A DNA stretch of 62,962 bases, filler included, from Lenisia limosa (Eukaryota > Protista > Breviatea): assembly GCA_001655205.1 (NCBI GenBank). It is 7 parts of 7 records of this genome, joined end to end, with 100 filler letters (N's around TTAATTAATTAA, not from the genome) between each part and the next. Parts side by side here need not be neighbours in the genome. Positions count along the whole stretch, not along the records: positions 1 to 27,804 come from LPNZ01008486.1; 6 more parts are not named here. The stretch is one strand, 5' to 3'. Under the pieces are notes generated by a model, which searched no databases, was not told the origin of the DNA, and saw nothing but the letters and a program-made list of their open reading frames with translations. Every line of letters starts with the position of its first letter. Position 1 is the first letter of the stretch. Of this stretch, positions 1-21,077 are shown piece after piece. Position numbers and translations under genes: made by a program.

Positions 1-1863
1 TTCCTGGGAGGGGGGGGGGGAGGGTCAATAAATTGTCATCTTGGACTCGCTTGACCAAACAGTTGCCACAAAAAAAACAGCCTAGTATGCATGCAAGATT
101 CTTGTGTACAATCTTAACATCATTTTAGTTTACCAAATAGCTATAATATTACAAACACAATGGTAACAGTAAATATTGTCAAATAGGGATGAAAATACAT
201 TTCTACATACTAGTATATGAAGTAGTTACCTTTTTTTCAACATTTAGAACCACAGTTATTGACATTATCATTTATTATTACTGATGGAATTTGCGCATGA
301 TCAATGATACCGTCTCTTCCATTCCCACAATCGCATTCCCATGTCTTCTTCCGCCACCATGATGTATGATGACCTTGAAGGGAAAATTAGCTAATAACCT
401 CAAGACATTTTTTCCGAAGATTATCTTCTACTTAGGAAACGGGTTCTTATTAAGTCGAAAAACAGGCACCTGAGAGAGGAGTTAGCATCACAACTTCAAG
501 ACATCACAAAGTTTACTTGCAGTCTTCATTACCTCAAGAGAAAAAGTCAAGCCTCGAAATTGATGCCGATGAGTACTGTCTTCTTTAAGAAGTCTGTGCC
601 AACTCCAAGCGTAAGGCCTTCTGCAAGAAGCGCATAAAGCTCAATTTATCATAGGAGTCCGTGTTTGCGGGGTTCTATTTTCCACCATGACATTTATTTC
701 CACCCCAACATATGATATGTATTATCTTATGATATATGATATGTATTTTCTGATGCATTGTTGTTTTGTGTTTCCCCTCTGACATACTTTATCATTACTA
801 AGCTCAGAATGCTATACTGCTACATCATCCATAGATAGGTTACTGGCACGGTTTCAGGAAACGCAGATGATGATCAAGGTGCAGGTAAAAGAGGAAAGGA
901 GCATTCCTTCTTTGAAGCGTATTTTCACCTCGTTTATCATAGAAAACGGCCTCATCTTACAGTCCTCTCCTACCTATATTCCATCATCCCCTTCTTGGTC
1001 AGATCATGTGAAGAAAAGCGCGCACTACTGTGACGAATGGTAGAACATTGATGAGGCAAAGGTATTACAATAGTTTACTTTAAAGAAGTTGATGCAGGGC
1101 AAAGGAGGGTGGAAGGTGTAGTAGCTGAAGCACGACCCTTTCAAAAACAGGGGATCGGGAAGGACACACCCCTTACCTAAAACAAAACTGCCCTTTAAAG
1201 GGCTACAATCTCCCGGCCTGTATCAGATTTGTTTCAGTTTTGTGACATTCAATTTGGATTTTCACGTTTTTAGAAGCCAATTTCTAAAAAGAACACCCAA
1301 TTCGGATATAATCGGATTAAATACTCTTTGCATCATGCGGCCGTTCAAAATTCTGGTTTTTCGCTAACGAGATTCACTCTTTTTGAGAATAACAAATCGT
1401 GCTTATCTCGCAAAATTAGAAGTAAAATGACCTTGACTTTGTTTATCCTTCATTTTCGGATGATTTGTTTTCTACTGTATTTCAACAATCGGTTTCAAAT
1501 TCTTGTAAAATATTTGGGATAGTAGATAGCTCTAACTAAGTAGCCCACATTTTTAACTTTTAATCACTTTTGAAGCCTATTTGCTGATTGATAGGAATTT
1601 TAAGGACGGATACTGAATAACAAAAAAATATACTATAAAACATAAACAAGAAATACATGATGGTTGCTAAGCTGGCTGCGATTTAAGTGGCCATGACGGC
1701 AGTTGCCAAGAAGGCGGCCCCGGCACCTCCTCAGAGAGGATGACCAAAACACTTCAAGACGCTTCCCCGACATGTCTATTGCTCCACCGTCTATCTTGTT
1801 CCCCGTCTGCAACTCCAACCAAATATGGACTCTCTTCCAGTAACAACAATTGAATAAAAGAAA

Positions 1864-3244
1864 CTACCAGAAGTCATCTTCGTCAAGATCACTTTCAGGA
1901 GAGAGTGCAACAAAATCAACTCTATATCTTAGAAGTCCTCCGATTCCTCCAAAACCCTTGCAGAATTGAGACCCTTCTTGAGACCTATCAGAAATGAACT
2001 CAAGTGATGACCCAAAAGATTTATAATTATTAGCAAACCACTCAAGCAATGGTTGGCACTCTTGAAGCTCAAGAGTAACCCCAGATTCTTCATCAATGAG
2101 AGATTCTGGGGTAAACGAAGAAGGATCCAAAGTTTTGATAATGTCTTTTCCTAAAAGAGGATCTCTCAGCACATATCTCTGAGTTTGTAAATTTTCCCAG
2201 CATATTAGGACTTCAACTGCCCCCAGCTCTAATGCTTGTAAAGTGTCTTTAACACCAAAACAATATTTTCCAGTGTCTTGAGAAATTTGGTCAAAAAAGC
2301 ATCCCAATAATTTTTTTTCTTGAATAAATTTAACGTTTCCAAGAGTTTCTGATGACAACTCGATAGCCTGATTAAAACCATTTTCTGATTAAAAAAAAAA
2401 AACTGTCAAACCCCCACCATACGACACGTCAACCATTTTTAATACGATTCCGAATAAACGTGGATCAAACATTCCACTTTGCGATAAAACTGTTTTAAAG
2501 TCTGCACTACCAGCAAGAACAAGACCAACAATATTGGGCAAGTTATGAAAACAAATAAACTTTATCATTCGAGATAAAAAATTGAGTCGCTAACTCAGCA
2601 ACTTTACGAACATAATTATGCCTTTTCTCCATTCGTAATCTCGCAAACCTAACAGCAGATTGTCCACCCCGCCCATGCTTTTTTGGTAGTTCAACTGATA
2701 TTTTATGAAGCACTGCCCGAGTATTGCCAGACAAAGTAGCAAATAGACATCCATTTCCATCCATTACAATAAAGCCGAATTTTTGATCAGACACCAATAA
2801 TTCATTGAGAGGTCATAATTAAAAGAACTACACAACTCTGTATGAAACTTGTTATCACAAAGATATAGGCTAGTATTCACTGGCTTAAATGGTTCCAAGT
2901 CAATATTGACTTTCTTTTCTTTACCTTCTTCGGAAATTACCGTACCACAATAAATAACAAGTCCATTAGTTGGTACACGATGGTATAATTTTAATTTTTG
3001 CTGCGTTGAGGTGATTGCTGATAGCACTGAGAGCCTATTCACTCGATTTTTAATATGGGAGGCAGTACCATATTCTTCTGCCAACATTTTTGCCACTCTA
3101 GAAATTTGGTCCTTTGGGGGTATTATAAGGGATATCATGGATGTTCCATTTCTCAATAAAAAAGTAAATGTACCCTCTTGCAGCTTGCAAACTCTTGATC
3201 AGTTGCTTTATTTGCCACTGTTTCACAGAATTTTCACCTTCCAT
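1864..3244 (-). CDS. eRF1: Eukaryotic peptide chain release factor 1; 5 exons (3244-3174, 3151-2837, 2813-2561, 2538-2412, 2384-1864), 428 aa
   Basis: Spliced translation has ARG|[18 protein letters not shown]|[24 protein letters not shown]|[19 protein letters not shown]|[27 protein letters not shown], acidic tail then TAG. Introns are 22, 23, 22 and 27 nt; exon sum 1287 nt is divisible by 3. Confidence 0.97.
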
Positions 3245-3359
3245 TTTCCTTGATTGTCCCCAGGTACCAGTTCCCAGTTGGTTTTGGTCAAATTTGGTTT
3301 CCAAATAGAGGTTCCAAGGGAAAAAAAATAAAAAATTCCCCAAAAAGATTGGTTGTTCA

Positions 3360-3426
3360 TTCATGGAGGTAAAGTAATATCGTAGATGGGGGTCTGACCA
3401 TATAGACTGAATCCGCTAAAGACTCC
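3360..3426 (-). repeat. 57-bp element, copy upstream of eRF1
   Basis: Reverse complement matches 6599-6655 at 56/57 positions. Confidence 0.9.
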
Positions 3427-3429
3427 GGA

Positions 3430-4390
3430 TACATCCGTGAATTTGGGGAATAATTTCTTCTCAAAGTTTCCGTTTGAGTTGTATTGGAGGCGAGTTTTGC
3501 CTTTTTGCGCACCTTACAGATATATCATAACACACAACAAAGGAGTATTCGATTATATATTTGAACCAGATATTTGAAAAGTATGCAACCTCAAGGGAAT
3601 GCAGCTTACAACATCATTCAAACACAAAGCCTTACATACAAGTTAAACATTCAATCATCTTGACCACCCACATCCTTGTCAAGTATATCAATATCGGCAC
3701 CCATCTCCTTGAGGTACTTCATAATATGCAAGTAGCCATATACAGCGGCATATCCGAGGGGTGTTCTTCCCTGTTTTAAAAGGTCAGTCAATGAGACATA
3801 TATGCATGCATACAGCGGATATGGGGGAAATTTACTTTTTATTGAACCTTGACCACCCACAATTTTTTTATTAGCTATGTATATAAATATCGGGACCCTT
3901 CTCAATCAGATACTTCACGAGATCCAGGTTGCCTCCTTCAACAGCAAATCCGAAAAGTGTTCTCCCCTATTTAATGAAGGTCCACCAAATGATGGATCAA
4001 ATAATGACAGGAAACAAAAGTTTGAAAATAATTGCATACGAAATGTAGCTTAGAAAAACGCAATCACAAAGGCATACAACACACAGGTTAAATTTACTCA
4101 ATACCATCAAGACCACCCACATGTGCATCAGTTTTTCCAATATCGGCACCATTCTCAATGAGGTACTTTAACATATCAAAGTGACCACATTTAGCGGCAT
4201 AACTTGGTGGTGTAAATCTCTGGTAAATTAAGGTCAGCCAATGAAGAGTGCAATGATTCAGTACCAAAGGCTTGAATTGAACAGAATATCACAAACACAA
4301 AGGCATACAACACACCTGTTGAGTATTTATTACCATTGTGACCACCAACATACAGCAGCTTTTAAAAATGAGCTGGGCCCTTCATGGAAG
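3430..4390 (-). CDS. Ankyrin-repeat protein, multi-exon (boundaries approximate)
   Basis: Three ankyrin-like exons: GRTPLGYAAVYGYLHIMKYLKEMGADID, GRTLFGFAVEEGNLDLVKYLIEKGPDI, FTPPSYAAKCGHFDMLKYLIENGADIG. Each is followed by a similar gtgggtggtc donor-like segment, i.e. tandem exon-intron duplication. Confidence 0.6.
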
Positions 4391-5829
4391 GACAAAGACT
4401 TGGACTGGACCCTAGATAGATTGCCTAATTTGTCGAATTTTGACTGGATTTTGAGTGGTTTTCTTCGCTAAGCTAACGAGACCTTTCCTAAGTGGAGGCC
4501 ACGAGTTTAGCGGAACGATGTGAAGGAAACGAGTGACCGTAGCAACGGAAAGGTCGAGTTAGCGGAGCAGAAGAAGACCAATCGGGCAAGTTTATGTGGG
4601 AATTCGCTTGGAAATAACTGAATTTACAAGGAAAACTACGTTAACGGCTAGGAGCACAAGTTTACACTGGTCGGTGAAAGTATCAAATTCTTTCTCTCAC
4701 ANNNNNNNNNNNNNNNNNNNNNNNNNNNNNNNNNNNNNNNNNNNNNNNNNNNNNNNNNNNNNNNNNNNNNNNNNNNNNNNNNNNNNNNNNNNNNNNNNNN
4801 NNNNNNNNNNNNNNNNNNNNNNNNNNNNTTCTGAGTGCCCCCAGTAGTCAGTAAGAGTAGTCTTCTGTTCGGAACTCAGACTCGGCAATGGCCTTATCAC
4901 CCGTTAAAGCAGCCTGGTATTGGATGGTGGTAACCAATAATCAATATTTGATAATTGTACCAAACAACGTGACCGTCTTCGCTGAGACTTTGTTTGAATT
5001 CTTGGTGTCAATAATCTGGCATGATCATGCGCGAGGTCTATTGTGTCCTAAGCAGTAAGCGTCCTTGATCAAAGTTTGTTTGCCTCCTTACTTCGGCAGG
5101 TAATTCGACATTGACTTGCTGTATTTATCGAATATTGGAGCGTATTCAGTCTAACAAAAATTTTTTTGGGGATGCTTTTGTTTGTTCTCAAATAAAAGAA
5201 GATCTGTTGATCTCTGGAACTGACTGGATTGGATGGAGATCATTTTGAGATCAAAGTCTCTGTCAGATATTTCTGTCAAATATAGTGCTGTATTTAAACC
5301 TTTTTATCGTATTGTATAAGCATATATACTCTAGAGGTAACTCCTGGCTTCTTTGGAAGCTGCCACCTATATCAATGCAAATAATATATTATATGATCTA
5401 TATCATAGCGACAGGGGGGCGGGGAAACCTCGACAGGGGGGGGAACCTCAACTATCTTTTTAATTTGGGAAATTGAAATAAAAAGGGGGAGGGGTATTAT
5501 GTGTTTCATAAATAATACAGACATTACATAGTATTACTAATACGTCATATCAGCTTTGTCAAGGCTTTAAGGCCAAGCTATATCAAAACACAAAAAAATG
5601 GCTAGCGAGACTTCTTTTTTCCTAGAGAAGTGAGGTTTTTCAAATGTCTTTTGAGAGCACAAGGTATATGACAGTTTAATCTCAACAACAAATAAACACC
5701 AACATACCACGGCGAGGCTTATCGACGGAAACTCTCTCGAAATTCAACGAGTTTTTGCTAGTGGTGTAAGGATAGACCAAACTGGTAATGGAAGAAATGC
5801 AAAAAAGGGACAATTAGAAGAAAGTACAA

Positions 5830-6396
5830 CTAACCCTGAGGTTTTTGTTGCTTTTGGCGCTTTTGACGCGTTTCATCTTCAGCTTCTATATCATGACTGG
5901 AATTAAAGAGCCAAAAAGTAGCTACAACCACATCCCTGCAATAGTAAGTAGCCTCTTCCAGTTGACGGCGCCTCTCGTTTTCAGCAGCCTCCACTTCTTG
6001 AAGGAGCCTGGCCTTATAGTGGTCAATGGTAGAGGGAGTGACGTTAACGCGCTTCTTTTTAGGAGAAATTGTCTCGTAGATGGTCATGGGGGCAAACTTG
6101 ATACAGCTGCAGTTGGCGTCACGGTCGGTGAGGAAAAGGTTAGCAGCACGGTACTTTGCAACTTCTACCCAAGCGTCTTTGGCAACGGCAGCGTCCTCAT
6201 TCTCCTTGGCAATCTCAATCAAGGAAACGAGCTCGAGGGTGTTCAGAATGAAGGAATAAAGGGCAGTTTCAGTAGGTGGCAAAGTGGCTTGGGTGAAGTG
6301 AACTGTTCCAGGAAGGTGGATGGCAAGGCGGGAAGGGTCAACTGAGTGGCCACTTTCAACAGTGACAACAAGACCTCCAGCAGCGAAAGGAAGCAA
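5830..6396 (-). CDS. Unidentified ORF/exon(s), head-to-head with AP-3 mu
   Basis: 188-codon open frame with charged segments (EVEAAENERRRQLEE; SPKKKR). No family recognised; start not defined. Confidence 0.35.
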   Translation of the reverse strand: MLPFAAGGLVVTVESGHSVDPSRLAIHLPGTVHFTQATLPPTETALYSFILNTLELVSLIEIAKENEDAAVAKDAWVEVAKYRAANLFLTDRDANCSCIKFAPMTIYETISPKKKRVNVTPSTIDHYKARLLQEVEAAENERRRQLEEATYYCRDVVVATFWLFNSSHDIEAEDETRQKRQKQQKPQG

Positions 6397-6590
6397 ATGT
6401 TTGTAATAATTGCAGATAGGGAAATGTCAATATCATAAGCTTTTGGGATAATATGTTTATGGAAGCTATGATATGGTTCAAATAACCTGTTTCCTGAAAT
6501 ATATATACCTAATTATTCTGGGGGATACAAGACGCAGTAAATTTATTCTTTGTATTTTTACCTGGGCACAAACTAGATTCAGCCAATTCA

Positions 6591-6655
6591 GGAGTTTGGC
6601 GGATTCAGTCAATATGGTCAGACCCCCATCTACGATATTACTTTACCTCCATGAA
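6591..6655 (+). repeat. 57-bp element, copy upstream of AP-3 mu
   Basis: gcggattcagtcaatatggtcagacccccatctacgatattactttacctccatgaa, matching the inverted copy at 3360-3416. Confidence 0.9.
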
Positions 6656-6732
6656 GATTGGAGCTTGGGATCTGGATGGGATTTGGGTCATGGATTGAGG
6701 CACAAGGTGGGTACAAGGGTTTAAGAGAAAGA

Positions 6733-9700
6733 ATGGAGTCTTTTTTCATGTTTAGCAACACAGGGTCTTAGTTTTTCTTGATCAGAGTTCCAATTTTTGA
6801 GAGGCAGTGGAGGTCACATATACCTAAATCAGCACTGTTTACTATTTGGGATTCGTTTAAGGATAGCGTTATTAGGAACAAGTCTTCCCAATTTCAAGTG
6901 TCTCAAAACACTGTTTTATATATGAAAGAGGCAGATATTATTATATTTGCTGTTTTTTCTTTGGAAGCCCAACCTCTTCTGTACCTTGAATTTCTGAATA
7001 GAGTGGTTTGTTTCATTTGTTGAAGTGATTTCAATCAGGTTGAAGTATTGAAAAAGTTCTTTAATGTGACAGAGGAGTCTGTTAAATCAAATTTCCAAAC
7101 AGTGTATCAGGTTGTTGTTGTTTCTCCCCCATAGTAATCTATGTTTTGTGAATCATAGATGCTTTCAATTTTAATTTTTTACAAAGAGGGTTTTATAAAA
7201 TCATACTTTCAGCAAACCAGGTACGCTGGGGAGGCATGCAGAAAGCGGTGTACAGAGATGCATGGTAATGATTACGCTGTCATGTTTTATTTCTCATTCC
7301 TTGGTTTGAAATATCTTGTGGGCGATCTTTCGGTCAGAGCTCGTTTTACCTGTTTCGAGCTTTTTCTTTCCCAAGTTTATAAGTTAAAAATACTAAAGGC
7401 ATGTATGAGAGCAGCCTTTTTTTTTCATGTCTTTAGAGTTGTGCTCCCTCGATAAATGTACCGCAATAATACGGATATCCTCGACCAACCCAGGCTTTCT
7501 GAACTTTTCAAAGGCAGCATCCAGGAAGATTATAGTTAATGATTATGTTTGGCTTCATAGTGACGAACAAAGCTAAAGCAACCAACTTCCTTCAACTTGT
7601 TCATCTGCTTCGGTCCGTTGGTAAAGATTGAAGGGAGGACTTTTTTTTTCAGCCTTTCAAAGATGGCTTCGTATGATCTTTTTTGCAAATGCTTGCGTCA
7701 ATTTTGATTTGAAAGATGGCTAATAAATATGTAAATACAAAACAGAAGTAATTATCTGTCTGATGGGTAACTGGCCTCTCAGCAAAAATAAACGTGGTGG
7801 CATTGATGTGAGAGCGTGACCTCAACTGACGAGAGGTCTTACATTCGCCTATGCAAGTGCATTGACAAAACTCCAAGATGAAAATTTGCTTTAAATATGC
7901 GTTCAAAACTTCTCTAGAATATGCTGGGAAGATGCATCATATTAAGAGTCCAGTGAAAATATTGTGAGGTTGAAAATTCCAGATGTATATTTATTTGCAA
8001 TCTCTCTGAAAATCATTTCAAAGAACAAATTTTATTGCATCTAATTTCTTGGAAAATTGAATTGCGCAGACTTAAGTTGTGGTAAACAGTTGCTCTATCC
8101 GAGATCAGTTTAGCTCATGAAACCTAAACACTATCTTGACTCTGCTTCACAATGAAGTTTACCATGTCGAATGTTTTTTGGAGGTTTTTCGGTTTTCACT
8201 CGGCAGTACCTCGTTTGTCCCTCAGAACCTCCTTAAACCAACCTCAAACTATATGATACACTATCTTTAATAAAGAAACAAATAAATGCACAGGGAAACA
8301 CAAACATACCTTACTGACGCATGATTTACTATATGCAGCCGTTCAAAATTCTGGTTTTTTCGGTCATTGTGGTTTCAGGTTACTCTGCCTTTTTTTAAAA
8401 CCGCGAACATGATAAAAACCGCGAACAAAAACTGTGGGTTTCCCCTCAATTTTGGACAAGAGATTCCTTGTTAACCCTGCTTTTACTATTTTCACTAATT
8501 TTCGCCCTTTAGGAAAAGACATTATCAATGAGAGATTCTGGGGTAAACGAAGAAGGATCCAAAGTTTTGATAATGTCTTTTCCAAAATACTACCTTCAGA
8601 GTATCTCATTATTTCTTTCAAAACACATCAAAAACACGGAATATGGACTGATGTAGCATATACTTCGATTTGAAGATTTTTTCCATTTAGCTTCATTATA
8701 TTGGCTGACATGGAAAATTCTTCCAAAAAACTGTTACAAAAGTTAGCTTAAATATCTTTTAACCACTGTATTGTCTCTAGAAATGGACTTCAGATTCGAA
8801 TTCTCTTTAAATCTGCGTTTCTATAGTGGGACACTTTATTATGCCCAGGTGCTATTATTTTGTAAGAGGGGGTTTTCAAAAATTATTTTGGACCTCGGCC
8901 CGGTTCGAATCAGATCACGAGATCTTTTTTTATATCTTCTCTTTTTTTGTCTTTTTTTTTATGTTACTGATGATCCTATCCTCGAAACTGTCGATTTTTC
9001 CACTAAAAAGGGTGTTATTGAAGGGATTTTTCAAGATATTTGGCTTGTTCGCACCAACCTATAATTATGTAAAATTTTGGACCCTTGAATTGAGTTTAAT
9101 TTAAAATCTGTTGCTTTTTTTTTTTTTGTTTTTTGTGTGTGTATTTTTTCTGGGGTTTTGGGATTCATTGTGTAATTGTTTTTAGGTTATTGATGAAATG
9201 GTCGATGATGGTTACCCTTTGTCAACTGAGATTGCACTTTTGCAAGATTTGGTAACGACTACTTCATATTTAAATAAAGCGCTTGAAGGTATGAATGTTC
9301 AAAGGAAGGTTTTCCCGTTGTTTTTAATTTGCTTCCTGAGAACACCTTGTCTTTTATTCCTTGGCGAAAAACTGATATTAAGCACAGCTCCAATGAAATC
9401 TATATTGATGTTATTGAAGAAATTGATTCAATTACTAATATCTCAGGAGTTTCTTCCACAACAATACATGGAAAAATCAAGGTAATGTGCCTTTTTATGG
9501 TGTTTTAGCACCTCTTTAGCACTTGAATTTTTTAATTATTACTTGAGGATAATATATATTTTTTGTAATATATCAGAGTTATACTATATGATATATACTT
9601 TTTTATTTGATATGATATAATATATGTACATATACTATATGATATAATATAGTTAACCGAATAATTCGTTGGATAAATTTTTTTATTGTGTACAAGTCTA

Positions 9701-12700
9701 TTAAAGTCATTTTTTTTCAACGGCAAATTGAAGCTCATATTGTATAATATATCCCCCCCCCCTTTTTTTTGGGGGTTTGGGCAAAAATAAATGTATATTT
9801 TTTGTGGGCATAAAAACAAGAAAAAATCAGCTTTCAAAATCTATCGATTTTGCTTCACGCAGACTTAAAACAGCTTAGAGAGCTTCTCAGCAGTTTGCGT
9901 GGAGAGTAGAGAAGACATGGGTCGGAAGTTAGACAAACCACTCCTCATTTAAGGTGGTGGTTCCACCTTCCACAACTCACCATTTCAGGAGAATTATTCT
10001 AATTATACACCTTTTGAAAATATTTGAAATCCCAAGAGGCAAATAATTGTTGAGAATTGAAGGCAAGATATGAGTAGACTAAAAATGAGCAAGATAAAAA
10101 TTGTGAGAAGCTCTCAATTCCAAACCTGTCAGTTGATAACTGGTTAAATTAAATTGTATAATAATTGACGGGAAAAGGACAGTAAATTCAGTGTCGACTT
10201 GTTTCTCTGGGAGATCTGGTGTCAATGAAGACCAACTGCCATATCGGTGTATTTAGCTTTTTTTTAGAGCAGAGCTGCACTAAGAAGTACTGCAAAAGTG
10301 TTCCATTACCCTTCCTCTTGTAAGTTTTCTTTTATGGGTTCTCTTCTCACCTTTTAGCTCCCTCCACCCCCTATTGGTATTGCCTTGTCTGTCGTTCTCT
10401 CCGGTGAGCTTTTTTATGTGTTGTTATTGACCTAATATTTGTGTTTGTTTTATCTTACTCTCTTCAGGAACACCTTTCCATGCCTTTGAGATGAACCAGG
10501 TTCTGAAAGGAGTACCCGCCATCTCCAAGTCCACCTTCAATCGCAAGTTGAAGGAGGTGATTCTCCCCAATCTTCGCGAGGTAAATATTTATTTCAAAAA
10601 TGTTCCATATCCTCATTAATGAGGCCTGGATTTACCACATTACGGAAATGGACCGCGAGCTGAAGCAGCAGCCCCGCTTCCCCATCTGCTATGATGGCCG
10701 ATACTCTAAGGTTTGTGAGACTGCTTTGTGGTGAGAATTTCCGTTTAGTGCCCAACTCTTTGGGTTCGGTGAGCGTCGCTATGGCGGACAGCAAGGTCAT
10801 TGGCCTGGGAATCTAGACCCGTAAGAAGCCCTCAGGACATGAAAACTCTGAGAAATATTAGCTCCCGTTTTTTATTATTTACCTCAAAGGAAAGTCCCAC
10901 GACCTGAGCCATAGCTGTCACACTCAGCGACCTCTCTGCCAAGGACCTGGATCCTGTCGGGACTGCCAACCTCTTCAAGGACTTGTGCTTCAGAGGCTTC
11001 TTGGCCGATCTGATTGTGGGTTATTCGTTCTTTTTATTTTTCAGATGCAAGAAGGTCAATTATATTTGGACAGAAAACTTGATAATCACAATACCAACTA
11101 TGTCTATTTCTGCTTTTAGCCACCAGCTTCAAGACAATGACTCCGGTGCTTTTGCGTTTGTTGACGTGACTTCGAGCTCTCCGAGATGCTTTGCTGTCTC
11201 CACGTTCTTCGTTCTCTGCAAAAAGGGATCCTGAAGGCGTTTAAGGACGCGAAGGTCAAGAAGGCTGGTTGGATGGGGTATTTTAATTAATTATTGTTGA
11301 CATGGCAGCCCCCTTTTTTTTTTGGGGAGGGGGGGATTGTTCATCTCAACAAAAACACTAGACATTCATGCATTTTCAAACCTGTCAAGCCTGGATGACA
11401 TGAGTGATGGTGCGCTGACAATAGTTGGCAATGCGTTTGCCTACAAATCAGTCAATTAAATTGAAAAAACAAAAATAAAAGAGGAAATGTAAAACGCAAT
11501 CACATTTGTGGAAAAGTATTACAATTGGGTGTAGTCATTGAATAGGGCTGAGATGATCGCCGACATCCCTCACCATCTCCACGGCTCCCACCTCAAGGAC
11601 GACAAGGTCACCGAGCACACTCTGTGCAAGGACCTGCTCTACCAACATGGTGGAGGCCTTCAAATCTCTTGTGGGGGTACTATTATTTTCTTGAAATTCA
11701 ACTCTTACAAATTAGCTCATTCGTCTTCCGTCTGGAGGCCGGTATCGTTTTGTCAGCTGGTTATCAAAACAAGTCCTTCACCTTCATTTCTGACCTCTGT
11801 GACAGTTGGCGGGATGTATTCCTAGNNNNNNNNNNNNNNNNNNNNNNNNNNNNNNNNNNNNNNNNNNNNNNNNNNNNNNNNNNNNNNNNNNNNNNNNNNN
11901 NNNNNNNNNNNNNNNNNNNNNNNNNNNNNNNNNNNNNNNNNNNNNNNNNNNNNNNNNNNNNNNNNNNNNNNNNNNNNNNNNNNNNNNNNNNNNNNNNNNN
12001 NNNNNNNNNNNNNNTCTTTTTTTCTTTTTTTTGTGTGTGAGTTTTTCTTGTTAATCTCATCTCAAACATCAGGATAGAGAGTCCTGATGCAGACTTTAAC
12101 ACAGTCGGGCAGAACAATACGACGAGTAATCAAACCTAAATACATGGCTACTGCCCGATAAGCGTTGGTGAAGGCGTGGTCATTTCAGCAACAAGTCACG
12201 GTTTCGACACCAGTCCTGTTGTTTGCTACAATAGAAAAAGAACATACAGACAAATGAGAGAGCTAAAATGAAGAAAATAATAACGTTAAACGATAGAAAT
12301 TTTGGAAAGAAATAGAAAGTAGATGAAAAATCCATTTTAACCTCACATACTACGCCTAAAAACTCTTTGCTTACCTTCAGTATCCTTAAGCTCAAGGAAG
12401 AACGGCTCCTCAAGGACAGCCTGCCATACAGCCTCAATGAGGTCGGCGTCTCTGACGATGATGTGGTTAGCATCAACGTCAGTAACACCTTCCTTACCAA
12501 AGAGGCTGGCTGTTGGCGCAGAACAGGTATATCATCTCCATTTGAGTTGAATTCCTCGTGTCTCCGTCACCTTCCCCTTTTAGAGCGTCAAGGACTTTCT
12601 TTTGCAAGACAATTTTGGGCCAATAGAATCAAATAAAAAATGACCGTTCATCTCGTGTATACAGTCTGATTGCTCATATCCACTCGTCGCATATTTGCGG

Positions 12701-15700
12701 ATTCAGAGGGGAATGATTGGAAACGTCATTTTTTTTTTGAGTGATTTTATTATATCAGCCCAAAATTGTCTTGCAAAAGAAAGTCCTTACGCTTTGAAAG
12801 GGGAAAGGTGACGGTGAGACAAGAGGAATGATGCTTTAGCCGGCTTTTCAGAACATGATCTTCAACAATTTCAAAGGTTATTCTTTCTGTATTCAAAAAG
12901 CTTCTTTTTTATATTAACAAAAAATTGAAATATAAAGTATACCTTGGGGTGTGACCTTATTTCAGAAGAGTATTAATTAGCTTATAAATAATGCCCTCAA
13001 AAAACAGAATTGAGGGATTTTGGATGCTGATCAGTAATAAAATGTTGAAGGTTTTTATAAGAACTTCTGTCTTTTTTTTTTGACTCGATTAATTGCCTAC
13101 TTTAAATGATAAATGATTTGTCAACTTCCGACATCACCTCTGCCTTCTCTACTCTCCACGCAAGTTACTGAAAAGCTCTCTTAGCTGTATTAAAGTCAAT
13201 GTGAAGCAAAAACTATCCTTTTATGGACCACCCGACCATATTGGTTAGTTTTTGACAAGAGAGGTATTACCGAAAATAGGAACCCTTTTCCGTCATTTTG
13301 ACAAATAGGTCGAGATTGACTCCAGGAAAATTAACTACCCCAATTTTAAAAACGCTTTCATTTCCTTTTAAAAATCTGGTGATCTAAAACTCAATTTTTT
13401 GAGAATATTCAGTTAATGGTACACTGGAGGATATGAACTATATAATTCTTATTTTCCACATAAAAACTTTTTTGAAAACGATATGAGTACTGGTCCACCC
13501 CCTTTAATGAAACTGCCTTTAGTGATCTCTTCTTGAAAAATAAAGTTTTGAGAAAAAATATGGAAAATATGGATAATATCAGAATGAAATCAACAATATC
13601 ATTCCAAAATCTCCATGTGTACCTGTAATATAGTAGATGTTGGGAAAATGAGAGTCTTTTTTTTTTGTTTTGGGTCTTTTTTTTGTCTTCGCGAAAAGTC
13701 ATATTTTGTCGCTTTGATCGAACTATTAGAAGCGTAAAACATCATTTACGGGGCAAAGGGGATAAAGGGGGTAAGAAGTGTGGGATATGGGGTGACACGT
13801 CATCGATATGTCATAAATATGATGGGGGGGAAAATGACATTTATGATATTTTTTTACCTGCGGGAATATACAATATTTATTTACCCGAGGGAATAGGATA
13901 TATAACATAATTTGACTCATTATTCCCCACTTGTTTTAGAGAATAGTCATGGGTGGGGGATATACGTCATGGGAATGTCATATTTTATATGATGAAAAAA
14001 TATGACATTTATCATCCGCGGGAGAATAAAATATGAGATTTATCATATTTATTTACCCGGGGGAAGAGGATATATGACATATTTTGACTCATTGTTCCCC
14101 ATTTGTTGAAGAGAATAGTCATATTTTGCGTTGTTCACAGAGAAGAATATGGCAGCCTTTCGGCTGCACATATGGCAGAAAGGAATGTTCATAAACCCCA
14201 ATTTCTCATATAAAATCAACACAAAAAAACGTGCAAAAAACACTTCAATTCATTCTAAAACCATTGATGATGCTCCCCAAAGGACAGGTCTTCAGCGTGA
14301 TCGATCAGTTGAGGAGGAAGTTGAGAGCAACGGAACTCCTGAAATCATGATTAATTGCTTATATTTTGTTAATAGTGCTAAGCACCTTCGGGATAATTCC
14401 TCAGTGCAGTTTTTTTATATAAAACAGTCCAGACATGAAAATTTCAAAAAAAAATGGTCTGGAATGTGACTATCCGAGGCTATATGAGGCTAAAATTGCA
14501 ATATGTAGACAATATGGCAGTGTTGGTTGTGCGTAGTTATAGCCATTTAAATTCCTCAAATACTATGTTTAAGCACCAGAAAGATGAAAAAAAGCGGAAC
14601 CAAAATTACACCCGAAGTTGTTTCATATGGAGAACTATCCCGAAGGGTCATTAGATTACTTACGATTTTTTTTTTTGATTTTTTTGAACCACTTTAAGGT
14701 CAAGAGTCTTAGATGCTTCCCTCTGTATGTGTTCAATACTATTTTTTGGTCCTTAACTTGAATACAAGTGATATTAGTTGTGATCACCTTTAAGGTACTT
14801 TCAAAACTATCTGGTATGCCTGATTTAAAACTGGTGTTGAATAATTCTGATCTTTTAAGAAATTGGTCATTTTTAGTGTTAACATGCAGTTCGTTTCACC
14901 CTTGTGTTAGGCTGAATAGGTATAATCAGTCTCATGAACTCAGTTTCATTCCACCTGATGGCGATTTTAACCTTTGTGAATTTACTGTTCCATCTTTAAC
15001 TCCCTTCAATATTCCAATTGAGATTGATGTTTTTTTTTTGTCATGATCTGTCTTTCATGAAAATGAAGGGAACACATGGTGAGGTTTTTATTTCGGTTAC
15101 TGCAAATCATGTGGTCGAGAACTGTGTTGTAACTTTTCCTCTTCCAACCGTGAGTGATGGTTCATTATTACTTTGTTGATTGATTACCTCTATCCCCTTC
15201 CTTGGTCCTGGCGTCTCACTGCGAGACGATTTTTAAGGTGTTAGCTTTTTATATATGATTAAAAACACTCAAAGATGATTTTTGTTGCGTTATTGAATAG
15301 TTTTTGCCTGAAAGATACCGTTGTGTGAATTTTTGGGCGTTATTCGAGGAAATTACACGATTTATTTGTAATTTTTAACCTGAAAAAGGTCCTTTTTGGG
15401 GTAGTAAATTACTAAAGACTTTATTATATTATCAATAGCACTATTCATAGCCATTATTTTATCAATGGTAACTATTAATAGCTATTATTTATTCAAGGTG
15501 GTTCAGTCTTTTTTTTTATTTTTTGTTTCTTTTTTTATAACAAATAAAAGTAAGTTTATAGCGTATTGGTTTGGTGGGGGGAACGAAAAACTAACAACAC
15601 ATGAAACACAACACCACAACCTTACTATGAAAGTTGGCCTGTTCCTTGTTGCTATGAAAACGACACAGCAAATTGTTTATAGCACTAAATTATGGGAAAG

Positions 15701-18700
15701 GATTCCTTAGACGTACATATACATCAGTAAGATCACACCTCATCGTCTGTCATTTTAACCAAATATTCCGCCGCTTACCTCGAAAGAGTTTCTTGAGCAT
15801 GCCTGACCTTCAGGTCAGTAGAAAGAGTAATGGATCAAGTTGGAGATATCGATGCAAACTATGGTCTCCAGAGAGTTGCCACTTGAAACTGGGGTACACT
15901 TGTTTAATTTAGTACAAAAACGGGGGAATGCACGCATAGTTTCATGTGAATTGCCAAATCAAATTACCGACTCAAGCACCTTAAGGTGGTTGGTTATGGG
16001 TCATTTTTGGCGGTTTTTGAATTTTTCGAAAAATGTAATGTGCAGATTTAAATTCCTCTTGTACTTTCCGTTAGAGTATAGTATGTAGCAAGTAGTAAAT
16101 GAGCACAAGAAAGGCAAGGTCTCACAAGCAGGCTCAGAGCACTAAAAAATCTTAAATGCAGTAGTGTGTTTAATGTTAGTTGTATTTCAATTAAAGAGGG
16201 ACGCAAACAATGATAGCAACATAATTATCCATTCGACATTTCGTAAATATGTTGAGACTAATAGTTCATCTGATATTAACAAAAATTGAATCCTCTTTTG
16301 AAATATTTTTGAGCTACTTTGAGCTAAAAATGGTGAATACCAGACGAAACAAGCGTGCTGTGTACCCTTCCCCCCCTCCTCCTCAAGAAGAATAGGCCAA
16401 GAAGTTGTCAAGCATACCATCCTCAAGTAGTCCAAGAAGAAGACGCCGGTAAGAACTAATTTGTAATTCCATGTGACTGTTCATCCTTCCTTCACGTTGC
16501 TGAGCTTAGCATCAAAACCCAGTGTCTTAATCCAGCTCTTGGTTCGGATAAGTCGTTGGTACATCTTTCACTTAAAGATGTTGACTTAATCGTCCTCCCA
16601 AACCTTCACTTATTACTCCGTTGAGGAGGAATTGTGTGTTTTGTCACAGACGCCATCTTGGATATTGTTACTGAGAAATTCATATTTTTCGTTTTCGGGT
16701 CATTTTTTTCGCTAAAAATCATATTTTGTCGCTCTGATCGAACTATTAGAAGCATAAAACATCATTTACGGACAAAGGGNNNNNNNNNNNNNNNNNNNNN
16801 NNNNNNNNNNNNNNNNNNNNNNNNNNNNNNNNNNNNNNNNNNNNNNNNNNNNNNNNNNNNNNNNNNNNNNNNNNNNNNNNNNNNNNNNNNNNNNNNNNNN
16901 NNNNNNNNNNNNNNNNNNNNNNNNNNNNNNNNNNNNNNNNNNNNNNNNNNNATTTTGCGTTGTTCAGACAGAGAGAAGAAAATGGCAGCCTGTTCATTAA
17001 CCCCAATTTCTAATACAAAATCCACAAAACCTTCACTTCATTCTAAAACCCCATTCATGATGCTCCCAAAGGACAGGTCTTCAGCGTGATCGATCAGTTG
17101 AGGAGGAAGTTGAGAACAACTGAACTCCTGAAATCATGATTAATTGCTTATATTTTGTTTATAGTGCTAAGCACTGCAGTGAACAATAAAAAAGAGAAGA
17201 GTGGAGGAACCCAGCAACTTTTAGAATACCCTTGAGAAGATGAAGCATCTTGATCTGTCTTCTGGATTTTAGTATTTCAGGAGTTCAGTTGCTCTCAACT
17301 TCCTCCTCAACTGTGCTGAAGACCTGTCTTTTGGGGAGCATCATCAATGGGGTTTTAGAATTAATTGAAAGGGTTTTTTTTTTGTGTCGATTTTGTATGA
17401 GAAATTGGGGTTTATGAACATTTCTTTTTGCCATTTGTGCAGCCGAAAGGCTGCCATTATCTTCTCTCTGTCTGAACAACGCAAAATATGACTATTTTCT
17501 TCAACAAATGGGGAACAGTGAGTCAAAATATGTCATATATCCTATTCCCGCGGTAAATAAATATGATAAATGTCATATTTTATGTTACCGCAGGTAAATA
17601 AATATGATAAATGTCTTTTTTTTTTTCCCGTCATATTCATCAAATATATATGACATTCCCATGACGTGTCACCCCATATCCCCCACCCTTCTTACCCCCT
17701 TCAACCCCTTTGTCCCGTAAATGCAGTTTTNNNNNNNNNNNNNNNNNNNNNNNNNNNNAAACTCTATAGTCTTCAAAAAAATCAAAAACGGAAAAAAAAT
17801 AGTGGACATTTTATGACTACTTGAAAAATCGTTGTGTCAACTGTCAAATACCTAGATATTGGTTCATATCTTACCAACTCCCCTTTCAGGTAGTCTGAGT
17901 AACCTGGGATCTCTTCAGTTTATTGGTCAATGACTCGTCTCAAGAGGGGAGGGGGACTAAGAGTCCTTTTGATGGTGAACTTGTTAGTTTCGCCGTGGAA
18001 GGCAAGCCCCCTCCTCATCTGAGTCGAGAGTCTCGGCGACCCCCTGGGGGAAGAGCTTGTCGGTGGTTTCAATGCTCTTCCTGGACCTTCATGTTGAAAC
18101 TCTTCCTTTCTTCCTCCTCTTCGTTATCATCATCGTGAGAGAAATGAGCAGGTTATTAACAAACACCAACAAAGACACGACATCCCCAACATATAATCAT
18201 ATGCCTCGTTATCTCTTTGAGACAGACATGCACTCCCCAAAAGAAATGACTTCCTTTTCCTTCTATTTTTTGACTGTCTTTGCCTTCTATTATATTAGTT
18301 TTCAGAATTAGGTACAGATCTCAAGTTAAAAAAAACCAAAAGTACCTACCCCGCAGAACTGAGTGGTCACGTATGTTTCAAATTATTTGTCAAAGAAAAC
18401 GGCAAAAAGAGTTCAGTTCAGGGTGATCAGATCAAGACATGAAGCCACAGGTGTTGACATTTTGGGGTAATCAGTCAGTTTCTTTCTCAGCTAGAATTTA
18501 TATTCACTAACCTTTTACTATAAAAACTTGTTGGTGTTATATTTTTTACTGTTTAGAGTGTTGGTTCTCATCAATTTTCTTGTAGTTTTGGGCAGGTGTG
18601 TGTGAGAGAAAAAACAGTATTCTCATATCTTTTTTATTTTGGTAACATGGAATGCTGGTCGAGTTAATTTTGGAAAAGAAGCTGTTTTAAAAGGATTTCT

Positions 18701-18897
18701 ATCTTTGTTATCTGTGTCTAAGGAACGACCTGTTCTTTCAATACAGTTTAAAGTAGCGCAATTCTCAGCTTCTGGTTTAAAAGTGAGATTTATTCTTTAT
18801 TTTGATTGATTCTCTTCACATTGATAATGTGAAATACAAAGCATTTAAAGGAATGAGGTCAATCACTCAATCTGGTCGATATGACATAAGACCTTGA
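6733..18897 (+). CDS. AP3M: AP-3 complex mu subunit; 11 exons (6733-6764, 6786-7005, 7039-7110, 9186-9308, 9332-9481, 14795-14865, 14890-15028, 15051-15149, 18557-18616, 18642-18782, 18805-18897), 399 aa
   Basis: Spliced product has IFERQW, EAQPLLYLEFLNRV, VIDEMVDDGYPLSTE, IPWRK..NEIYIDVIEEID, KLSGMPDL, CSFHPCVRL, LSFIPPDG, SGLK|IDSL..KYKAFKGMRSITQSGRYDIRP-TGA, colinear with mu3 adaptins. Exon sum is 1200 nt. Confidence 0.9.
8511..8583. pseudogene. Captured ~60-bp fragment of eRF1 last exon with a 17-bp inverted duplication, inside AP3M intron 3
   Basis: 8524-8583 is essentially identical to 2094-2153. 8512-8528 (ggaaaagacattatcaa region) is the reverse complement of 8567-8583. Confidence 0.9.
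9845..13215 (+). mobile_element. Mutator-like (MULE) DNA transposon inside AP3M intron 5
   Basis: Imperfect inverted repeats of ~110 bp at ~9847-9955 and ~13100-13211 (shared core ttgcgtggagagtagagaag) flank a spliced transposase-like gene. No TSD identified. Confidence 0.6.
10468..12530 (+). pseudogene. Intron-containing Mutator-like transposase, degenerate
   Basis: Motifs in MULE order: ICYDGRYSK, NSLGSVSVAMADSKVIG, SAKDLDPVGTANLF, DNDSGAF, HHLHGSH..LC. In-frame TAG (GI*T, ~10814) and an apparent frameshift near 10920. Partly in an N gap. Confidence 0.5.
13672..14385 (+). repeat. ~700-bp dispersed repeat (family D), copy 1
   Basis: Matches 16697-17174 (direct) and 17275-17730 (inverted). 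Contains internal sub-repeats (atatgacatttatcat / acc(c)gcgg). Confidence 0.9.
16697..17174 (+). repeat. Family D repeat, copy 2 (contains N gap)
   Basis: Shares both ends with copy 1 (tcatattttgtcgc... and ...atagtgctaagcac). Confidence 0.9.
17275..17730 (-). repeat. Family D repeat, copy 3 (inverted)
   Basis: Reverse complement aligns to ~13735-14345. Confidence 0.9.
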
Positions 18898-19500
18898 TAT
18901 ATTTTGGATTTTAGGCAGTGCAATTGATATTGACTATGGATCAGAGATTAACTGTGGATCCTTATCCCTACTTTACCCTTCAGTATTGGCTAATATCGAA
19001 TTAAACAACTCCAGACTGTACACTATAATATCTCTTGGCTTCTTGTTTGCTTGAGTTTTCTTCTTTCTGGATATTTTGAAGCAGCATGATTCCACGTAAA
19101 TGATGTGAATGGCCAGACACATCAGAAATCAACTACTCATCATCCTTTCCAAACATCGTCATTGACATTGAAATATTGCAATATGGGAATTTAGAAGCAG
19201 AATATAATCCTTATCTCCAATGATTGTGTATACGATATTGCGGGGGAGGCACCGAGAAAGCTGTGCAAACGATTGGGTGAATAATATTATACAGGTCAAA
19301 ATGTATCTCTCAATAGCACATCGTTTCACCTGCCCTAAAGTGAGCACGAAGAGTGGGTTTTGTTGAGACACTTGTTAGGTTAAAAATCAGCCCGAGCCTC
19401 TCAATTAGAGGATTAATAACCATAATTTGAATCATTAAACTTCATTTTCAAACACACATTTCTGAAAGCTAAGCCATATTGCTCTCATTATGATTAACGA

Positions 19501-19592
19501 TACTATTTATCAGCAACTTGGATAAGTTACACTTATTTCGTCGTTCAATTGAATGATCAAGTGAAACTTATCCAAGTTGTTGATAAATAGTA
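19501..19592. mobile_element. 92-bp palindromic MITE-like element
   Basis: 28-bp inverted termini tactatttatcagcaacttggataagtt / aacttatccaagttgttgataaatagta (one mismatch); begins and ends with TA. Confidence 0.65.
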
Positions 19593-21077
19593 TACTACAT
19601 ATCATACTATATCATATACTATGTCCAATATTTGATATAGCTATATGTCATGATGTTAGCTAACGGCACTCGATACTCTTCCTTACCAAAACGAAACTTT
19701 ATAAATAGTACCCAGTTATAACACTTGGTTATTTGTGCATCCTGGTAGCTTTTTGACACTCATTACTTTTTAGACACCTCTCCTGATAGCTTCCACTGGC
19801 AGATATGGGGTATTTTGAAAGATCTACTTCGTCATAGTGTGATTAAGATATCCCAGTTTTACCCAATATATTACATATATCTTTTCCAAACTCAGGATAG
19901 TGATCATCTTTTCCATCTTTGATGTTACTAATTACTATAAATATGCACTTTACACATCTTGCAAAAATATGAAATCTTTTTTCGCATAAATTTTGAGATC
20001 AAGAAATTTTGTGATCTCGTACCCCCAGGTTTTTCAAAATAATAATAATGCCAATAGTTCTAACTTCAGGTACTCTTCAATCACCTTCTCTCTCAATATG
20101 TACTTAATATATTATATAAAAATTGATTTTGGGGATAAAGGGGCAATAAGAGGACCTTTGTATAAGATCACTTCCTCGGGTTGTTCTTGTGTATTTTTTA
20201 TTTCAACTCCTAGATTAGTGTATTTTCCATTGCTAATTTAGTGTATTTTATACACTAAACTCGAAAAACACCTATTTTTAGGAATGTTCTAGAAACACTG
20301 GACTCAAAACCCATCAATGTAGGAGTCAAACCATTGTCTCAATTACAAAAAATCAAATTAGAACAACAGAATGACTCTGGCTTAAAAGGTTATCTTTGTG
20401 CCCAGGTAATAATACAAAGAATTTAGGGGGAGGATTTATATACACTTTAAGCAGTTTTTCAATTATTTTTATGTTGTATCACCCCAAGGAGGGTTTGTGT
20501 GAGGTTTTTATGATAATCCCCAGTGCAAATCGGAGACTTTCTGTTTCTAGGATGAATATACCCTCAGATTATTGATGCACTAAAGTTCAAAGTTAAAAGT
20601 TAGGAGTTGGTTAGGAGTGAGCGGAGCCTGGGCACATGTAAAACAAGCACATTTAAATTGCATTTAAAAGACAGTGAGAAGCGTACAGAACATACAACTG
20701 TGGCAAACTTTGTTTTTGAAACATAGCGCTCTTCCTGGGCTCTTCTGTCGTTATTTCACATTCCATAATACTTAGAAATTCGCTCCCCTCCGGGTTTGGT
20801 GCCGCTGCTTCTCCTAATATGTTTATCAGTAAACTTTGGTTTTTATATTCATTCCTCTTTAAATAGATCTTTAAATATTATTACCCTTTTTTCCTCTTTT
20901 ATACACAACTGATCCTCTTCCAGTCATGATTATTACTCTTATTCTTATAATTACAACTAATATCCCTTCTTGTGTAATAGACACTTGTTTGTCCCACTTT
21001 TAATCACACTTGTTTCTCTTTAAATCAGCCTTGTTCCCCTTGTTTTCATTTTTTTCTACATATGTATATGGTGCGCA

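Follow-up and report, generated by a model that had tools for sequence, protein, structure and literature searches.

Ultra-short GT..TG introns in two genes of the breviate Lenisia limosa: transcript-derived proteins support splicing at TG acceptors

INTRODUCTION

Of all the signals in introns removed by the major spliceosome, none is more invariant than the AG at their 3' end. TG acceptors make up 0.02% of human sites, where they appear only as tandem alternatives beside an AG and never as the sole acceptor; their study indicates that the early steps of splicing are AG-specific and that later steps can select TG, the choice being proposed to fall at step II (Szafranski et al. 2007, PMC2374985). 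The occurrence of human TG as a rare alternative at the side of AG has been taken to mean that AG is needed for intron definition. Here we analyze a stretch of 62,962 nucleotides (nt), filler included, from the genome of the anaerobic protist Lenisia limosa (Breviatea; GenBank assembly GCA_001655205.1), hereafter the window, in which two housekeeping genes, those for eRF1 and for the AP-3 mu subunit, carry 11 tiny introns (21-33 nt), six of them ending in TG. These six resemble the U2-type TG sites of human and other vertebrates in their GT..TG form and in that their removal is ascribed to the major spliceosome (PMC2374985). Unlike the human sites, TG closes 6 of the 11 tiny introns, and for at least three of these the 25 nt that follow contain no AG.

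Ultra-short introns have been described in ciliates (Stentor, with 15-16 nt, and Paramecium), chlorarachniophyte nucleomorphs, myxobolids and Dicyema, in all of which they are reported to be of the GT-AG type and to present reduced motifs (PMC13644364). The tiny introns of Lenisia share with them a length below ~35 nt, the reduced motifs, weakly conserved As near the 3' end and the lack of a real polypyrimidine tract (PMC13644364) and, with 21-33 nt and minimal splice motifs, they show the features of this class. They differ in that about half of them end in TG and in that the Breviatea are an unrelated lineage.

Giardia, Trichomonas and other intron-poor eukaryotes reportedly present fused branch-point and acceptor motifs with fixed spacing, as Irimia and Roy are said to have described in 2008. 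The tiny introns of Lenisia are similar in their short and near-invariant putative branch-to-acceptor distance, whereby the branch site would effectively define the 3' site; the motifs of Giardia and Trichomonas, however, are long, highly conserved and AG-ended, whereas that of Lenisia is a mere T-N-A-Y at 4-5 nt from the acceptor and its position -2 may be T. Introns that break the GT-AG rule across a whole lineage, either at both ends or by means of structure and inverted repeats, are known in Fritillaria borealis, Amoebophrya and the euglenids. Lenisia likewise presents many rule-breaking introns in one lineage, but it keeps the 5' GT throughout and departs from the rule at position -2 alone, and this solely in the tiny class. 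Varied 3' dinucleotides and a short branch-to-acceptor distance are likewise seen in U12-type introns.

RESULTS AND DISCUSSION

Transcript-derived proteins define the intron boundaries

In both genes, T-rich segments of 21-33 nt split conserved peptide blocks, shifting the frame or introducing stops. The two genes are:

eRF1 gene, 1864..3244, minus strand: 428 codons spread over 5 exons and closed by TAG at 1866-1864; its spliced product is identical to P0241.
AP-3 mu subunit gene, 6733..18897, plus strand: 399 codons spread over 11 exons and closed by TGA at 18895-18897; its spliced product is identical to P0392.

The transcripts used here (P0241, P0243 and P0392) are TransDecoder open reading frames (ORFs) from a Trinity assembly, EukProt entry EP01086 for Lenisia limosa (Breviatea, taxid 1653305). 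P0241 (428 amino acids, aa) was found as the second cluster member beside P0121, the window's own ORF fragment, while an AP-3 mu exon, used as the query of a representative search, led to P0243 (193 aa), the cluster of which includes P0392 (399 aa); P0243 and P0392 are two isoforms of the same Trinity gene. Once spliced, the window and the ORFs P0241 and P0392 are identical at 827 of 827 residues.

Every donor/acceptor pair reproducing P0241 and P0392 exactly was enumerated. Full identity requires the removal of 11 tiny and three long (2.1-5.3 kb) introns, with lengths of 22, 23, 22 and 27 nt in eRF1 (n=4) and of 21, 33, 2075, 23, 5313, 24, 22, 3407, 25 and 22 nt in AP-3 mu (n=10). Sliding ambiguity allows 1-9 registers per intron, exactly one of which starts with GT in each of the 14 introns. 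In this GT register, five of the 11 tiny introns and the three long ones end in AG, and the other six tiny introns end in TG; among all the registers allowed by the transcript proteins, none provides an AG end for any of these six. The absence of exactly the intron segments from P0241, P0243 and P0392, as established by matching at the protein level, amounts to their precise removal from mature mRNA. The TG junctions are therefore those in the assembled mRNAs, and the six GT..TG segments, which the genomic DNA contains but the transcript-derived ORFs lack, are supported as real introns. The introns obtained by junction enumeration are:

eRF1 intron 1, 3173-3152, minus strand: 22 nt, GT..GAG.
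eRF1 intron 2, 2836-2814, minus strand: 23 nt, GT..ATG; no AG within 25 nt downstream (enumeration and AG scan); two registers fit P0241, GT..TG and TT..GA.
eRF1 intron 3, 2560-2539, minus strand: 22 nt, GT..TTG; contains CATAAC, which resembles a branch motif; the next 25 nt lack AG.
eRF1 intron 4, 2411-2385, minus strand: 27 nt, GT..CAG.
AP-3 mu intron 1, 6765-6785, plus strand: 21 nt, GT..CAG.
AP-3 mu intron 2, 7006-7038, plus strand: 33 nt, GT..CAG.
AP-3 mu intron 3, 7111-9185, plus strand: long, 2075 nt, GT..TAG.
AP-3 mu intron 4, 9309-9331, plus strand: 23 nt, GT..TTG; in-frame AG at 9339-9340 (9 nt downstream) unused.
AP-3 mu intron 5, 9482-14794, plus strand: long, ~5.3 kb, GT..AAG, with an N gap and repeats.
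AP-3 mu intron 6, 14866-14889, plus strand: 24 nt, GT..CAG.
AP-3 mu intron 7, 15029-15050, plus strand: 22 nt, GT..CTG; a single register fits; in-frame AG at 15067-15068 unused.
AP-3 mu intron 8, 15150-18556, plus strand: long, ~3.4 kb, GT..TAG, with two N gaps and high-copy repeats.
AP-3 mu intron 9, 18617-18641, plus strand: 25 nt, GT..TTG; overlapping 22-nt GT-AG candidate at 18596-18617 unused.
AP-3 mu intron 10, 18783-18804, plus strand: 22 nt, GT..TTG; no AG within 25 nt downstream.

The original prediction, made by reading the window, had proposed 11 introns of 21-33 nt, five GT-AG and six ending in TG, and the enumeration returned the same coordinates, lengths and termini throughout. 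The six TG introns are all, as it had claimed, of a length that is not a multiple of three (non-3n), and the full-length ORFs of 428 and 399 aa that it had put forward equal P0241 and P0392 exactly. Its authors had also considered that transcripts might retain the segments or use other junctions; at the protein level, the transcript ORFs use the TG junctions.

Two sequencing runs containing this DNA, one of DNA (X1) and one of RNA (X2), carry a 2016 date and come from a single study, and one of them is a poly(A) 'metatranscriptomic' library. X2 contains a share of 0.65 of the words sampled from the eRF1 stretch 2150-3300 and of 0.58 of those from 18540-18900. Complete splicing would predict ~0.76 and ~0.63, and retention of the TG introns 0.85-0.95; the values lean weakly to splicing, and incomplete coverage could also account for them. 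In the literature, Lenisia is reported in mutualistic association with a bacterium, which a mixed-culture 'metatranscriptomic' library would fit. An exact search of JGI metagenome contigs for the spliced eRF1 exon 3/4 junction returned 0 matches.

TG as the sole acceptor

Three of the TG sites admit an in-frame GT-AG alternative (9309-9340, 32 nt; 15029-15068, 40 nt; 18596-18617, 22 nt), and these three could not be excluded by sequence alone. They are ruled out by the transcript ORFs, which keep LPENTL, SFMKMK and VCVREKT; since the alternatives would delete or replace LPE, SFMKMK and VCVREKT, the junctions used in the mRNA are the TG ones. No AG is found within 25 nt downstream of 2814, 2539 or 18804, and the internal AGs of these introns lie only 4-9 nt from their 5' end. 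In the absence of any usable AG within that distance, the evidence supports TG as the sole acceptor of at least three introns (2836-2814, 2560-2539 and 18783-18804). The earlier claim that no AG could restore the frame thus holds, within 25 nt downstream, at these three sites and fails at the other three, where GT-AG introns can be drawn in frame, while the accompanying interpretation, namely that the GT..TG segments are real introns, stands, and the dispensability of AG is supported for all six.

In the literature searched we found no description of introns in Lenisia or in any breviate, a mention in the 2016 genome paper (doi 10.1038/nature18297) being possible, and no report of an intron with a TG end as its only 3' splice site. 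A frequent, constitutive TG acceptor in introns that are probably spliceosomal would be new, as would its occurrence in this lineage.

Anatomy of the tiny introns

The tiny introns are composed of 56% T, 17% A, 17% G and 9.5% C, with 33% T in exons. Conservation is limited to the initial GT, which is all that is shared at the 5' end (GTTGTG, GTTTAT, GTTTTC, GTTTTT, GTATTC and GTGAGA in the six TG introns), an A-Y motif and the final G. As originally predicted, an A occupies position -5 or -6 in all 11 tiny introns, where it is followed by T or C, mostly within TTAAT, TTGAT, TCAAT, TTTAT or CATAAC; at 17% A this would arise by chance with a probability of ~3e-6, for positions picked after viewing the data. 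The T-N-A-Y motif thereby defined in 11 of 11 introns is a candidate branch site, as judged from its sequence, and matches the general branch consensus yUnAy. From its A to the ligated G there are 4 or 5 nt in every tiny intron. Gs at +2/+3 from the A are bypassed for an AG at +5 in eRF1 intron 1 and AP-3 mu intron 6 and, where such a spacing offers no AG, the TG at +4/+5 serves as acceptor, even with an in-frame AG 9, 18 or 22 nt further on. Six introns have T at position -2 and five have A, with never a C or G (p ~0.03 if unconstrained, given 27% C+G), so that the sufficiency of a terminal G, put forward in the original prediction, is conjectural. The TG introns are tightly sized (22, 22, 22, 23, 23 and 25 nt), with 21-33 nt for the tiny AG introns. 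In the long introns, the best branch-like motifs lie ~9-12 nt before the AG, behind a short pyrimidine run. A crude descriptor (GT, 19-35 nt, A-Y at -5/-6, A/T followed by G at the end and at least 45% T) recovers 10 of the 11 true introns, with 3 purely exonic false matches in 2.5 kb of exon.

Four of the five tiny AG introns (21, 24, 27 and 33 nt) have lengths that are multiples of three, against none of the six TG introns (Fisher p ~0.015), a split that may be due to chance. An in-frame stop is present in three of these four, the intron at 14866-14889 being the one that lacks it.

A putative distance rule for acceptor choice

We consider it probable that these segments constitute a class of ultra-short (21-33 nt) spliceosomal introns in which the -2 base is not fixed as A and the acceptor is set by its distance from the branch A. 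From the arrangement of the introns we infer that a spliceosome removes them, that the A of the motif acts as the branch point, that distance sets the acceptor and at which step the site would be chosen, and the idea of a ruler is consistent with the sequence of all 11 tiny introns. In the proposed mechanism, U2 would pair with the T-N-A-Y motif and step I would proceed without reading AG, because 4-5 nt between branch and acceptor would leave no room for U2AF. In step II, docking and ligation would then involve the G found 4-5 nt beyond the branch A, because it would be the sole G within reach, with AG preferred if present at that distance and UG serving otherwise. Cryo-electron microscopy of C*/P complexes has revealed that in step II the last G of the intron pairs with its first G and that position -2 contacts the branch adenosine, a contact at which a U at -2 could fit. 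An ability of the later steps to pick TG would agree with the conclusion drawn from human TG sites, the selection of which at step II is taken to indicate a tolerance of the catalytic core for UG (PMC2374985).

Several considerations weigh against this reading as a whole. The A at -5/-6 may be something other than the branch point, and the distance of 4-5 nt is below the branch-to-acceptor distances known from model organisms. The support from RNA is at the protein level only and comes by way of a third-party Trinity assembly, so that the junctions are known from protein rather than from complementary DNA or reads; no X2 RNA contig was placed on AP-3 mu exons, among contigs over 14000-19900, a hole that proves nothing. 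The sample, moreover, comprises 11 tiny introns in two genes, from a window chosen for looking odd.

The most serious competitor, which we regard as a live rival even if a rather unlikely one, is that the TG introns are spliceosomal and have their acceptor set by other means, be it a ruler of ~22-25 nt that starts at the 5' splice site, use of whichever suitable G comes first beyond the T-rich tract, or a lineage-specific factor, in which case the conserved A-Y would serve another role. The narrow range of the TG introns (22-25 nt), compared with the wider one of the AG tiny introns, favours a ruler from the 5' end, which fits the data nearly as well, and the status of the A as a branch candidate, recognized by sequence rather than by mapping, leaves room for rulers that do not involve the branch. 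Against this rival, the length of the tiny introns spans 12 nt and the A-to-G spacing just 1 nt, and Gs nearer the A are bypassed in two introns.

Support from genomic DNA and remaining alternatives

The window comes from a gapped assembly, with gaps here that fall only in intergenic DNA (4702-4828) or in long introns (11826-12014 in AP-3 mu intron 5; 16780-16951 and 17731-17758 in intron 8), none of them touching exons or tiny introns. A contig without Ns is available from ENA (ERZ3820729, NODE_164, coverage ~35x) and is 100% identical to the window over 12-4701 and 4829-11825, a range that contains the eRF1 gene as well as exons 1-5 of AP-3 mu, and with them the TG intron at 9309-9331. Logan contigs of X1 over 14414-16123 and 17672-19900 contain no differing letters at a depth of 38-42, and no variant is listed in them at the other three TG sites (15029-15050, 18617-18641 and 18783-18804). 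In X1, 100% of the sampled 31-mers are present for 2150-3300 (eRF1) and 100% of the sampled words for 18540-18900 (AP-3 mu exons 9-11). Three of the four assembly gaps are closed by other assemblies, which also reveal gaps to be mis-sized: in the ENA contig the true length is 74 nt for 4702-4828 (L001 7584-7657) and 177 nt for 11826-12014 (L001 410-586), and the gap at 17731-17758 measures ~8 nt rather than 28 in a Logan contig.

With these data it is very improbable that the copies in the window are silent and that the transcripts stem from paralogues or alleles that are intronless or have canonical AG introns, the TG ends being decayed acceptors, a scenario that had been contemplated from the start. 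Since the junctions were checked through protein alone, a paralogue with exclusively synonymous changes is conceivable, but the identity of all 827 residues to the transcripts and the single-copy DNA depth (~38-42x on AP-3 mu exons and ~35x for the assembled ENA contig) argue against a hidden canonical paralogue. So do the unbroken single DNA contigs over the sites, devoid of variant letters, and the preservation of the GT, the A-Y motif and the terminal G in all six segments.

Even less credence can be given to removal without a spliceosome, whether by cleavage of the IRE1 or tRNA-endonuclease type, as structured introns like those of euglenids or through DNA elimination. Introns of the XBP1/HAC1 type measure 23-26 nt, a size like that of the TG segments. 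All six segments, nonetheless, start with GT and have the motif, size and composition of their GT-AG neighbours in the same genes; the folds of the tiny introns are weak and dissimilar (0 to -8 kcal/mol), with unrelated shapes and no shared stem joining the ends, and the segments appear in DNA at full depth and without the TA-type boundaries of eliminated sequences. A sequencing or assembly error concealing true AG ends is the least probable alternative of all: no support was found for it, indels at the T10 run of AP-3 mu intron 7 would not yield TG, and every base is the same in two assemblies and in the Logan contigs. It is implausible, moreover, that A-to-T errors arose six times independently at one and the same intron position, and the original prediction had already judged six independent errors giving TG unlikely.

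As regards assignment to known classes, the U2-type features are partly present, with a 5' GT in 14 of 14 introns and a 3' AG that is missing in six of the 11 tiny ones. U12-type introns were rejected, as both the 5' RTATCCTT and the TCCTTAAC branch motif are absent from all six TG introns. The human type of alternative TG acceptor does not apply at 2814, 2539 and 18804, which have no nearby AG, and an intron of the euglenid type was discarded in view of the invariant GT and of the weak, dissimilar folds. A germline-limited segment (internal eliminated sequence) was likewise rejected, the segments being present in all DNA assemblies at single-copy depth with no flanking direct repeat.

Implications for acceptor recognition and annotation

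It seems possible, and we advance it only tentatively, that the spliceosome of Lenisia gave up AG recognition for ultra-short introns, that any G 4-5 nt past the branch A is ligated, and that UG, or perhaps NG, closes about half of the tiny introns genome-wide. If true, a free-living eukaryote would use TG as the sole acceptor in a large share of its introns, implying that the AG requirement can be dropped, and the loss of AG would be tied to extreme intron shortening, with branch and acceptor 4-5 nt apart. Lenisia would then be the first organism known with a routinely AG-independent step II and would provide a natural test bed for the selection of 3' splice sites, in which the catalytic-core reading of position -2 could be tested in a natural system.

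Gene predictors restricted to GT-AG introns would yield many frameshifted or fragmented Lenisia genes, the six TG introns being all non-3n. To our knowledge, BRAKER3 would not normally report non-AG ends. This predictor was used in the annotation behind the above description of ultra-short introns (PMC13644364), and similar introns have possibly been missed in further genomes with ultra-short introns, among them those of myxozoans and dicyemids, annotated with canonical-only models.

Other features of the window

Exon 2 of eRF1 is ~83% identical to human eRF1, and the C-terminal domain of the protein matches solved eRF1 structures with E = 1e-62. The NIKS motif, involved in stop-codon recognition and embedded in TASNIKSRVNR in the human protein, reads HIKN at 3046-3057 (minus strand), in a domain that is otherwise ~83% identical. 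No in-frame stops were seen in eRF1 or AP-3 mu, the terminal stops of which are TAG and TGA, respectively. The AP-3 mu exons fall into four groups on the plus strand (6733-7110, 9186-9481, 14795-15149 and 18557-18897).

Pfam searches with 20 further ORFs of the window identified only ankyrin repeats, a cluster look-up of nine other window ORFs revealed no transcript partners, an Rfam scan of the window gave no match, and no recognisable genes were apparent in the additional 8 kb of the ENA contig. Three ankyrin-repeat exon units stand in tandem at 3650-4350 (minus strand); each has a ..D.HVGG.D-like tail at its end, and the spacers of ~110-130 nt between them have a GTGTGTTGTATGCCTTTGTG motif in common. 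One of the spacers is readable as a GT-AG intron of 77 nt, and in-frame stops occur in the middle unit; no transcript was found for 3650-4350, which may represent a decaying tandem array.

An X2 RNA contig joins 15133-15149, the end of AP-3 mu exon 8, to 19774-19887 through a 4.6-kb GT..AG intron. The join (15149-19774) skips exons 9-11, and the protein would end early as ..FPLPT-TPLLIASTGRYGVF-stop. This contig, circular and 124 nt long, is a unitig closing on a shared CTTTTCC, and the join could reflect an alternative 3' exon, a back-splice or a template-switch artefact.

High-copy repeats fill the long introns of AP-3 mu (14000-14600 and 15970-17750), with a DNA word depth of 300-650 versus ~40 for unique sequence, so that a single gene combines tiny introns with multi-kb ones laden with transposons. 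The stretches 14024-14297 and 17386-17648 are linked by inverted joints, which suggest that inverted copies of one element flank AP-3 mu exons 6-8. A near-perfect long inverted repeat at ~19500-19595 is followed by TA-rich repeats of the 'tatactatatgatata' type, which recur at 9560-9660, inside AP-3 mu intron 5; the sequences at 19500-19650 and 9560-9660 look like a small foldback element, akin to miniature inverted-repeat transposable elements (MITE-like).

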